A stretch of 64,000 bases of DNA from assembly GCA_010909165.1 (NCBI GenBank), contig MU008166.1:1736001-1800000 (forward strand). The letters are read 5' to 3'. Shown here piece by piece: positions 32,381 to 42,191 of this stretch (positions are counted from its first letter, which is position 1; each line of letters opens with the position of its first letter). The notes beneath the pieces were generated by a model. The model was not told the DNA's origin, made no database searches, and saw only the letters and a list, made by a program, of their open reading frames with translations. Source of the stretch: Anthoceros angustus. Lineage: Eukaryota > Plantae > Anthocerotophyta. Both the position numbers and the translations under genes were made by a program.

Positions 32381-32621
32381 CAGTATGTGTGTCCAAATGG
32401 CTTAGGCCAAATGGACACACATACTGGAAGAACGTCATAGTTAAGCGCTCTACACTGCAAGCGGGACTGGGATAGGATACCTAGAGAGGAATGCCTCTAG
32501 TCATAGTTAAGCGCTCTAAACTACAAGCGAGACCCGGATGGGGTACCTAGAGAGAAATGCCTCTGGTTATAGTTAAGCGCTCTACATTACAAACGAGATT
32601 CGGATGGGATACCTAGAGAGG
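32381..32621 (+). mobile_element. 5S-rRNA-derived element, copy A: hairpin followed by three 66-bp 5S ICR-like units
   Basis: Hairpin 32381-32426 with 15-bp perfect arms. AGTTAAGCGC occurs at 32439, 32505 and 32571, each followed by a C-box-like GGATRGG..ACCT at the spacing recalled for plant 5S. Confidence 0.65.
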
Positions 32622-32632
32622 AAGAGAGGAAT

Positions 32633-32845
32633 GAAGAAGAAGAAGAAGAATTTTATTTGAGTCCACTAAGGACGGATTTCCGTCATGGGACTTGGTACTT
32701 GACAACTTGTACCATGGTGTGCCTAAGCTACTTGCACCTAGGGCATCCACTCCCTTTAGGCACCCCATCTAAGTACCAATCTAAGCTCAAGATGCTTAAT
32801 CACGGCGTTCTTATAAATGTGTGTCCATTTGGACTAAGCCATTTA
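32633..32845 (-). mobile_element. 5S-rRNA-derived SINE-like element, copy C
   Basis: Minus strand: head ATGGCTTAG.CCAAATGGACAC, 5S-like AGAAC...TTAAGC...GTACTTAGATGGGTG, two stem-loops, AATAAAA and a (TTC)5 tail. Closely similar to 41968-42191. Confidence 0.65.
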
Positions 32846-33077
32846 GTAGCCTAGTTTATTCCATTGAGCAAGTTTGCCTGGAGTACCGAGTCCCATGGCG
32901 GTATGTCCGTCCTGAGTGGACTTCAAATAAATTGTTTGTTTGTTTGTTTGTTTGTTTGTTTGTATAACACTAACACTCTACAAATCTGCGATTCAAACCT
33001 AGGCGAAGCCATGAATGTTAGAAGGACGAGGCCGGCCGTCTTTTGTTTCGTGTCTCTCTTACTTGTCCTTCGTGTCG

Positions 33078-39099: not shown

Positions 39100-39956
39100 G
39101 CAGACGTGAGGTTTGAGAAGCCAAATTTACTGCTATATGTTTGGAGCAAACAAGGGTGTATTGTACACATGTACAACTCTTACATTCATGAGACGGAACG
39201 TTGGGCAACGCGCCGGCTCAATAGTTCCATCTACAAAAGCTAGGCTGCAGCAACAAACAAGGGTGGATTATACACAGGTGGAACTGTTACATTCATGAGA
39301 CGGATCGTTGGGAAACGTGCAGGCTCATTCGTTTCCTGCCTATGCTGAAGCAATTTTCGGAAAAGGATCAACGGCATCCGGGTGGAAAGCATTCGTCTCT
39401 CCTGGCCTGGATCCCAGGCTGTAGAATGCAAAGTGCTCGGGGTTCCAGGCGCTGGTGTCCATGTGACATATGACCACGATCTTGGCGAGGACGCCTTCCT
39501 TCTCTGTGAATTCCAGTGACCCCATCTTTCTCTATGGACGCCCTTCTCTCTCTCGGAATATATAGGCAGCTCCCGTCTCAAAGCCCAAGAATCAAGTAGA
39601 CTAATTGTCTGGTTTGACGGCGGTAAGTCCCCAAGATCAAACGCAGCATGTGGATGTGGCCTTTGTGACTTTGTAGCTACATATGTAAGATGTGCCACGC
39701 CGGCATGGACGCATCAAGTCATGTTTCTCCAGCCCTCCTGTGACCAGCAAAGTTTTACCAGCAAAGTTCAGGCATGTATGTACTTCGCAGCACTTATTTC
39801 GCTACGTTGTCAGATTTTGGGCTTCCAGACCCATCTCTGTGTTTTCTTTTTGCTAATGTCAACATACTTCAAAATCTCCTCCCTTTGGAAGGCAAACACC
39901 GGCGCCACAACCTGCAGCTTAGCTTTCGCGATACCCGTGATGGGTCCAGATGTGGC

Positions 39957-40560
39957 TTATCCTTCTTTCTTCGTTTTGGAAAACGCCTGACACAGCCTTT
40001 CACTTAAGCTTGCTTGATGTTGTGGATGCTTCTCATCCCCAATCAAGAAACTGTGCACCAGTCCTTCCTTGTCAGTCCACCAGCTCTGACCTGGCTGCTT
40101 CCATGCCCTGATCCTTTTTCTCCTGGCCTGCATCTTTTGTGCCCGCTGCTGCATCTGAGCGCTGGTGTTTATGTTTGACATCAATACATATGCTGCAGGG
40201 TCTTTCTTGTCTAGCTTCACTGCTTCATTGAAAGCATGGAGTCGTACTTAAACGTTGCCGCACATTCGACAAGCACCCAACAGTGTGTGCCAGATTGCAG
40301 CATTGGGCTGTAACGGCATTCTGCTTACTAAACATAGTGCCTCATGCACTTTTCCTGCGCGGCCCAGGAGATCCACCATGCATGTGTGGTGATTTTCCAT
40401 GGGAACTAGGCCGTAGTCTCTGCTCATTGCCTCAAAGTGCTCCCGCCCCTCCATCACCAATCCTGTATGACTACAAACTGTCAGTACACTGAGGAATGTG
40501 ATACCGTCTGCTGCATGCCATCCTGTTTCATTTTCTGGACCAACTCAAAGACCACTATGC
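39957..40560 (-). pseudogene. 3' relic of a paralogous WW-type PLS-PPR gene
   Basis: Near-identical to the C-terminal 27290-26697 part of the intact gene (HFEAMSRDYG...KQPGQSWWTD...KTKKEG), with a premature stop and no upstream PPR array. Confidence 0.9.
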
Positions 40561-41967
40561 GGGGCGTTGCAATCGGGACTGCAGGTTCATGGAAGCAGGT
40601 GTTGGATGCGTTTCCTCGTAGAGAGTTCATTGCAGACACTTGGAGTTTGGTTATTGCATTCTGCACCTAACTTTGCGGGAGTGAAGTGGTGGTTTGGGAA
40701 ACTTGAAGAAAAGAGGTGAATCTGCTCGAACGCTTGGACAAGAGAAGAGCCCACTGTCGTGACATATGCAGTGCTGATTCCAAGTCGGAGATAGCACTGG
40801 GTGAATCGTGATGCGCCAAAAGAGATCCATGCATGCGGGGTTTGCACTTTCGATGCTCAGGAGGTCTGGTAGCTTCCTCAAAGGCCCGGGCCCATCCATC
40901 TCCCTTCGCTTCAGCAAGCAAGCGATCGCTGTTTAGCAGGTGGAGGGGTTTGAGCCATCAATCTCTTTTGGCTTCGGAAAAGCAAGCGAGCAAAAAGTAT
41001 CTAATATACAGGCCAGGGGCCCAGCCCAACGAGCTTCGTCAGCTACGGTAAGCAAGCCAGCACCTGGTCTTCCTGCTGGATCAGGGTTCAGGTGCCACTA
41101 ACAGACTTGGCCCTCAATGCAGTGTCTGAGCAGGAAAGGGAAGAGGCTCTGTGTGGACATGCAGAGAAGCTGGCCTTGGCATATTGTCTGCACCAAGCAT
41201 TAGTGTTGCATGATTGGGGCATGCATTTCCGAGCTTGAAAGATTAGGTTCCTAGTTTGATAATAATCTTATCCGTAGTTGCCTAAGGGAGCCAGTGGGCA
41301 AAAGGGATAGAAGGTGACAATTCCAGTGCCCAGTTCACCATGTGGCCTCTAATTTATTAGGTATTCTAGTCTAGTATTATCCAGGTGGCTATGCAGGTAT
41401 CCAAGAGGTATACAGTCTAATATACAGGGCCAGGGGCCGCAGCCCAACGAGATTGGTAAGCAAGCGAGCCCCTAGCCGGCTCAAGGCCAACGGTCTCCAT
41501 GAGCGTCCGTAGGAACGCCGGTAGGTTATCCTAGCTTGTAGTTTTATCTATGACTTGCCGTCATGAGAACTCGGTAAGAAATCTATTATAGTTCCACGAC
41601 GGAATTTCTGTCATGGACTTGGTACTTAACGAGGAAAAGAAGATTTTATTATTAAAAAGAGATGAGAAAAAAAATTTATTATAAAAGAGAGATGAAAAAA
41701 AATCAATCCACCCCAAAAACAAAGGGGGAAATCCAAAGAAGGGCACCATGTCCGGGGACTATTCCACGATCACCCATTTCAAAACTATCAACAAAAAAAG
41801 GCCTACTTACCACCCGAAACCCTTATGGTTCGGATATGAAAAGACCTACTTACCACGGGTGTCGACCTGGTACTTAACAACTTATACCACTAAGGGCATC
41901 CACTCCCTTTCAAGCATCCCGTTCGATCTGGGCGTAGGATGGTTAACAGCTGCGTTTAAGCCATATA

Positions 41968-42191
41968 GAAGAAGAAGAAGAATTTTATTTAAGTCCACTA
42001 AGGACGGATTTTCGTCATGGGACTTGGTACTTAAAAACTTGTACCATGGTGTATCTAAGTTACTGGCACCAAGGGCATCCACTCTCTTTAGGCACGCCAT
42101 CTAAGTACCGATCTAAGCTCAGGATGCTTAATCACGGCGTTCTTATAAATGTGTGTCCAAATGGCTTAGTTGGCCTAAGCCATTTGGACAC
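41968..42191 (-). mobile_element. 5S-rRNA-derived SINE-like element, copy B (further degenerate copies follow at about 41590-41965)
   Basis: 17-bp perfect hairpin at 42153-42191; same body and AATAAAA-(TTC)n tail as 32633-32845. A degenerate tandem copy lies at about 41855-41965 and a tail-only copy at about 41590-41630. Confidence 0.65.

Follow-up and report, generated by a model that had tools for sequence, protein, structure and literature searches.

The 64-kb window analysed here (64,000 nucleotides of the hornwort Anthoceros angustus; contig MU008166.1, positions 1,736,001 to 1,800,000 of the forward strand) contains members of an abundant, discrete retroposon family with a promoter region significantly similar to that of 5S rRNA genes. 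These are probably short interspersed elements (SINEs), i.e., short non-autonomous retroposons lacking long terminal repeats (LTRs), whose promoter region descended from a 5S rRNA gene, as in elements of the SINE3 type. The family is best classified as a plant 5S-derived SINE. Its structure, its high copy number, discrete ends with unrelated flanks, a nested insertion, variable tails, significant similarity to the 5S internal control region and presence in two species, each with diagnostic bases of its own, are directly supported by the data. An earlier note on this DNA had proposed a 5S-promoter retroposon family, and the 5S-profile, copy-number and terminus tests support this proposal. We infer that RNA polymerase III (Pol III) transcribes such elements and that they are copied by target-primed reverse transcription with the help of a long interspersed element (LINE).

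The family is best represented by two minus-strand elements, A and B (Table 1). They are non-coding units of 212–229 bp, sharing 89% identity across an alignment of 219 nt, in agreement with the two closely similar elements of about 220 bp described in the earlier note, except that B reaches a few bases further, to 42195. The start of the family head, ATGTGTGTCC, is defined by the loose ends of other copies and by a related element, C. The 5′ end of A is short by about 10 nt: the consensus of the loose ends past 32844 opens with GGACAC, which corresponds to the remaining part of the hairpin. Every module listed in the earlier note was recovered in both elements, and in the same order. Read in their own orientation, A and B comprise a 5′ hairpin, a 5S-like segment, a small hairpin (TGGTAC-loop-GTACCA), a two-tier 3′ stem-loop (AGTCC..GACGG-AAAT-CCGTC..GGACT), the sequence AAATAAAA and a (TTC)5–6 tail. 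The head is followed by the motifs AGAAC..TTAAGC..GTACT..GATGGGG, and the 5S-like string reads AGAACGCCGTGATTAAGCATC...GGTACTTAGATGGGGTGCCT. Folding yielded a z-score of −10 for the 5′ hairpin and of −3.4 to −3.6 for the 3′ stem-loops. The element terminates with ATGTGTG... at one end and with (TTC)n at the other, the tail varying between copies: (TTC)6 in A, (TTC)5 in B and (TTGT)8 in the element formed by C and its 3′ part, D.

The resemblance to 5S rRNA genes was assessed with a profile made of 18 distinct plant-type genes, which were collected from metagenome contigs with a 28-nt pattern and confirmed by Rfam at 100–116 bits. The profile was searched on both strands of the window (128 kb of strand) with all filters off, and replaced a pairwise alignment to one 5S gene (+2/−3 scoring), in which A was significant (z 6.6) while B and C were not. 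The top three profile matches of the window are located in A, B and the first of three tandem units of C, all of them in sense orientation and in one register, while the E-value of the fourth match is 1.6. In the 5S-like stretch A and B cannot be aligned to C by blastn, and because of this divergence A/B and C may be regarded as two partly independent witnesses of the 5S likeness. Dinucleotide shuffling of A, B and C unit 1 produced no sequence reaching the real profile score (0/2,000), and the alignment to 5S rRNA proposed in the earlier note is therefore significant against shuffled controls. At 48 of the 58 positions between 5S nucleotides 40 and 97, the 5S base is kept by at least one copy.

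The stretch matched by the profile is the internal control region of 5S genes, which comprises an A-box (+50–64), an intermediate element (IE, +67–72) and a C-box (+80–97), in Xenopus numbering; it is likewise the core of about 70 bp by which Cassandra is defined. In plants the canonical C-box is AGGATGGGTG (PMC10853983). Comparison of C unit 1 with verified plant 5S genes revealed 9/9 identity in AGTTAAGCG, then 18 nt exactly as in 5S, then 13/17 identity in the C-box stretch; the earlier note, which had reported 10/10 and 14/17 at the exact 5S spacing, was close. The spacing of A-box, IE and C-box is therefore that of the 5S control region, as expected of SINE3 elements. Common variants among family copies, of those listed, map to 5S positions 46, 49, 50, 62, 64, 65, 68, 69, and 73, and none of them falls within positions 51–61 (A-box core) or 74–99 (C-box). 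A similar pattern has been reported for Cassandra retrotransposons, where variation clusters beside the boxes. The GG-loop-CC stem closing helix IV of 5S rRNA (GGGTGACC, 5S positions 85–92) appears as GGGGTGCC in A (32766–32756) and B; given the few copies, a retained stem and a C-box conserved simply as sequence are indistinguishable here.

Abundance and termini of the family were examined in contigs of three sequencing runs aligned to positions 32150–33150 at ≥80% likeness. One DNA run (X1), containing 80% of the region's sampled words, originates from the same organism; two others (X2 and X3), with 5% of the words, originate from a second, related organism. In X1 the word depth is about 13.8 in the single-copy flanks and 40,000–112,000 in A, with 2,988 contig pieces aligned. 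The summed depth of A is thus about 3,000–8,000 times that of single-copy sequence, a value that is not a copy number and is taken as an order of magnitude only. The family consists of thousands of copies in this sense, far beyond the few that would have spoken against the proposal of the earlier note, and amounts to on the order of 1% of a genome of roughly 100 Mb. Loose ends of contigs accumulate at 32385, 32633/32635, and 32844, and the consensus agreement of the flanks beyond them is only 0.38–0.45 (0.38–0.41 at the tail of A, 32633/32635). Such low agreement indicates that flanks differ from copy to copy, and hence that the family is dispersed and has discrete ends. Depth over the 3′ half of A is roughly double that over its 5S-like half, which fits either 5′ truncation of copies or the sharing of the 3′ module with other elements. 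The head hairpin of C has about 1,600 times the single-copy depth, while its three units and D have only 2–5 times, so that C/D belongs to a rare sub-lineage.

In the related species the family occurs at a similarly large excess, and the majority bases at 32733, 32801, and 32805 are peculiar to that species, the pattern expected if subfamilies continued to amplify after the species split. Among the listed positions, A differs from the X1 majority at five (32659, 32701, 32739, 32778, and 32790), and B carries the majority base at all five. In keeping with the general definition of SINEs in SINEBase (PMC3531059), the family is shorter than about 600 bp, non-coding, dispersed and highly repeated, and it possesses a simple-repeat 3′ tail of variable length.

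Table 1. Family members, their modules, 5S-profile matches and adjacent features in the 64-kb window.
Feature	Position	Strand	Remarks
Copy A	32633..32844	-	Member of the abundant family; nested inside C/D
A, tail (TTC)6	32633..32650	-	Contigs of other copies lose match here
A, 3′ module (small hairpin and two-tier stem-loop)	32660..32714	-	−19.1 kcal/mol, z −3.6; greatest contig depth
A, 5S-like segment	32752..32815	-	Corresponds to 5S rRNA positions 36–99 (A-box, IE, C-box); 44/65 columns identical
A, 5S-profile match	32815-32752	-	12.0 bits, E 0.0071; 5S positions 36–99; best in window
Copy B	41967..42195	-	Older full-length family copy
B, 5′ hairpin with 17-bp perfect stem	42150-42195	-	−30.7 kcal/mol, z = −10
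B, 5S-like segment	42097-42146	-	From 5S profile
B, 5S-profile match	42146-42097	-	8.3 bits, E 0.098; 5S positions 37–86
B, tail (TTC)5	41967-41982	-	From sequence
C, 5′ part of rare related element	32381..32632	+	Hairpin head and three tandem 66-bp 5S-like units
C, hairpin head	32381-32427	+	From sequence
C, three tandem 66-bp 5S-like units	32434-32631	+	From self-comparison
C unit 1, 5S-profile match	32429-32486	+	7.5 bits, E 0.17; 5S positions 40–97
D, 3′ part of same element as C	32845..32963	+	Middle region, stem-loop, CAAATAAA, tail
D, stem-loop	32889-32922	+	
D, tail (TTGT)8	32932-32963	+	
E, 5′ part of old degenerate family copy	41864..41966	-	Directly 3′ of B
F, 3′ part of same old copy as E	~41577-41630	-	Degenerate stem-loop and tail; opens with second copy of 15-bp duplication
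G, unrelated T-rich retroposon inside E/F	41631..41863	-	Flanks GTTAAGTACCAGGTC / GTTAAGTACCAAGTC; terminates with AATAAAATCTTCTTTTCCTC
tRNA-Asp(GTC) gene	42261..42332	+	Only tRNA gene in window; 65 bp from head of B

The remaining copies are interrupted by later insertions. The earlier note had recognized a related plus-strand copy at 32381–32621; this copy exists, but 32621 is not where the element ends, and its 3′ part, D, is located beyond A. In a multiple alignment C and D together are colinear with A and B along the entire element, and a contig of the related species joins 32501 straight to 32843, the C and D parts being contiguous there without A. Since A lies between the two parts, it represents a nested insertion into C/D. 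The degenerate copies described at 41590–41965 constitute a single old minus-strand copy, E/F, which is likewise colinear with A and B over its whole length and is split by the element G. The target duplication of G matches at 14 of 15 positions; only 15 of 3,000 random pairs of flanks scored as high. G itself is 233 bp long and contains many T4–8 runs. Its AT-rich end carries an internal duplication (..ATAATAAA..), its tail is TCTTCTTTTCCTC, and it has no relationship to the 5S-like family. The antisense (plus) strands of A (32633–32844) and B (41968–42195) are free of stops in one frame over 71 and 76 codons, respectively, probably by chance; a word search with the 76-residue translation from B matched no protein.

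The mode of propagation may be outlined from these features. A 5S-like segment with A-box, IE and C-box in 5S register would allow TFIIIA, TFIIIC, and TFIIIB to bring in Pol III, which would start about 45–50 nt upstream, as at a type-1 internal promoter. The 5′ half of the 5S gene appears to have been replaced by an unrelated stable hairpin, located at the predicted start, which coincides with the 5′ boundary of the family. In C the boundary is at 32385, 44 nt upstream of AGAAC, compared to 39 nt in 5S genes, and thus at the place where transcription directed by a 5S-type control region would be expected to begin. The transcript would extend through the whole element. No T4 run is present in A or in the majority sequence, the TTTTT of B being private to that copy, and its absence from A is weakly compatible with Pol III transcription. 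The 3′ stem-loops, the AAATAAA sequence and the (TTC)n or (TTGT)n tail could be recognized by the reverse transcriptase of a “stringent” LINE, the 3′ module of A being the presumed recognition site, followed by target-primed reverse transcription into new sites. The LINE partner would most plausibly be of the RTE type, since plant RTE LINEs have microsatellite tails and are partners of TS-SINE (bioRxiv 10.1101/2022.11.04.512097).

Several observations weigh against the assignment to 5S-derived SINEs. A search with the Rfam model RF00001, the check suggested in the earlier note, gave no match at E ≤ 10 in segments of 11 kb, 501 nt, and 85 nt. The element does not show the sequence and fold of a whole 5S rRNA, and positions 1–35 and 100–120 are absent; as RF00001 finds nothing, only the promoter core of 5S can have survived, and the 5S assignment is based on a sequence profile and not on a covariance model. 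The profile scores are modest (Table 1) and identity to 5S is only 60–68%, while the reference genes are of angiosperm type, metagenomic and not the host's own. The distribution of common variants refers to the listed positions and is supportive only. No significant target-site duplications were found at A or B, and those at C/D are weak; A apparently replaced about 6 bp of the C/D target and adjoins an 8-bp local duplication. No LINE is present within the 64-kb window, which contains only two copia-like fragments, and no discrete Pol III transcript was seen in a probable RNA run, where the element occurs only within longer contigs. Finally, plant 5S genes additionally make use of a TATA-like element located upstream (PMC11070557), which would be left behind when a SINE moves. 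The sequences CTAGG (A) and ATGG(C)TT (B) were considered as target duplications and dropped as not significant, and matches to CCTAG are accounted for by a repeat within C/D. The 3′ module gave no matches when collections of metagenome and viral contigs were scanned for its exact pattern.

The blank RF00001 search and the low identity could also mean that the family is a genuine LINE-mobilized, SINE-like retroposon whose likeness to 5S is not due to descent or does not represent a working promoter, being convergent or decayed, with transcription driven by another signal or by read-through. The absence of reportable 5S matches in units 2 and 3 of C and in copy E, the location of the element within longer contigs of the probable RNA run and the presence in the head of a tRNA A-box-like sequence, TGGCTTAG, are in line with this possibility. 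It is nevertheless rather unlikely, because the three best profile matches in 128 kb of strand all fall on family members of two sub-lineages, in sense orientation and in one register, with scores that shuffled sequences do not reach, an exact 5S distance from A-box to C-box and listed variants that avoid the box cores. Neither does the doubled depth of the 3′ half, which together with the missing target duplications at A and B and a 5′ palindrome readable as a foldback might point to the common 3′ end of a LINE, represented by 5′-truncated copies, or to a derivative of a DNA transposon or Helitron, make a discrete SINE doubtful. Many copies share the same sharp 5′ boundary, past which their flanks agree poorly; the head hairpin is highly repeated in its own right, and no coding capacity or LINE sequence was found beside the copies in the window. 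The ends of the element bear no terminal inverted repeats (TIRs) and no Helitron-type TC..CTRR termini; the sole palindrome is confined to the 5′ head, with a microsatellite at the opposite end, which is unlike miniature inverted-repeat transposable elements, TIR elements in general or Helitrons. An origin from a LINE end or a DNA element is thus quite improbable.

Even less probable is an interpretation of the copies as solo LTRs, or as fragments either of a terminal-repeat retrotransposon in miniature (TRIM) similar to Cassandra or of another LTR retrotransposon with a 5S module in its LTR. The known carrier of a 5S core of about 70 bp in plants is Cassandra (PMC10853983), and A and B form a pair of direct repeats separated by 9.3 kb. 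The 9.1 kb between them, however, contain exons of a glycosyl hydrolase family 3 (GH3) gene as well as a tandem duplication of 1.63 kb, while gag and pol are absent, and this host sequence excludes A and B as the LTR pair of one element. B and E abut without an internal domain, and other copies have unrelated flanks on both sides and tails differing in unit and length. Two LTRs, a primer-binding site (PBS), a polypurine tract (PPT), TG..CA ends and 5-bp target duplications, the hallmarks of Cassandra and other TRIMs, were not found: the termini are of the hairpin and tail type, and neither PBS nor PPT is adjacent. Embedding in TG..CA LTRs or in TIR or Helitron ends, which the earlier note had named as evidence against its proposal, is therefore not observed.

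Three retroposon insertions (B, E/F, and G) are stacked 65–700 bp upstream of the tRNA-Asp gene, within positions 41577–42332 of the window. This arrangement hints at integration near Pol III genes, with the tRNA gene as a possible targeting cue, although one locus proves nothing. A more far-reaching proposal, and an unlikely one on present evidence, is that this family represents the plant SINE3 that has so far been missing, a living example of those 5S-promoter retroposons from which Cassandra LTRs have long been postulated to have received their 5S module, and that the family and its LINE partner integrate preferentially beside Pol III genes. Past the tRNA-Asp gene, three tandem 46-bp units (96% identical) are followed by tandem units of 65–77 bp (42406–42543 and 42582–42784).

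Other features of the window include the 1.63-kb tandem duplication (34015–37021), whose copies are 99–100% identical and double an exon-bearing block inside the GH3 gene; it either arose very recently or is an artefact of the assembly. An intronless gene on the minus strand (26697–31610), 770 bp from the head of C, encodes a PPR protein of the PLS type that is 1,637 aa long and bears an E motif; repeats of 312 bp occur within it (30001–30924), and an exact look-up of the protein found no record. This protein supports a land plant as the host, and run sizes of about 100–125 Mb are in line with a small genome of that kind. Two minus-strand open reading frames (839–1843 and 22593–23477) code for a retroviral-polymerase SH3-like domain and are probably fragments of copia-like LTR retrotransposons, judging from this domain. 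No 5S-like module was found beside either of them in the window.

Among known mobile elements, the family most closely recalls SINE3 and other 5S-derived SINEs of animals, represented by zebrafish SINE3, AmnSINE1, fruit-bat MEG, and lepidopteran HaSE3 (PMC10946416, PMC10886601). Like them it is short and present in high copy number, with an internal 5S-type promoter region (A-box, IE, and C-box) on the 5′ side and a LINE-like 3′ region that includes a stem-loop as well as a tail of simple repeats. Unlike them it resides in a land plant, retains only 5S positions of about 36–99, starts with an unrelated perfect hairpin of about 45 nt and is not recognized by RF00001. Retention of only the promoter part of 5S, such that no functional 5S RNA is possible, is also known for the Ajax TRIM of nemerteans, although Ajax is an animal LTR element, which the family is not, and upstream regions have diverged in lepidopteran SINE3 families (PMC10886601). 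The architecture is therefore not new. With Cassandra TRIMs of vascular plants the family shares the condition of a plant mobile element with a 5S core of about 70 bp over A-box, IE and C-box (PMC10853983), but its copies are single units with a microsatellite tail. Another plant SINE with a microsatellite tail is TS-SINE of Nicotiana, which occurs with SolRTE LINEs and has a conserved 3′ region in common with an RTE LINE (bioRxiv 10.1101/2022.11.04.512097), providing a working model for the copying of the hornwort family. TS-SINE differs in its tRNA-derived head and (TTG)n tail, compared to a 5S-like head and (TTC)n or (TTGT)n tails.

5S-derived SINEs occur in fishes, mammals, reptiles and insects. 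According to a 2024 review, plants have no known example, and Cassandra LTR elements are the only place in which the 5S promoter has been observed there (PMC10946416). A full-text search of a literature collection found no later report of a plant 5S-derived SINE. While the architecture is known, the host is new, and the family would be the first plant 5S-derived SINE reported. It should be masked and named in genome annotation. If the assignment is correct, its thousands of mutated 5S control regions could be used to study the promoter requirements of plant TFIIIA and Pol III, and the family would make it possible to test in concrete terms whether Cassandra originated from the insertion of a SINE3 into an LTR, as has been suggested (PMC10886601). 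It would also mean that the 5S route to Pol III-driven retroposition arose in plants as well, in an early-diverging land plant.

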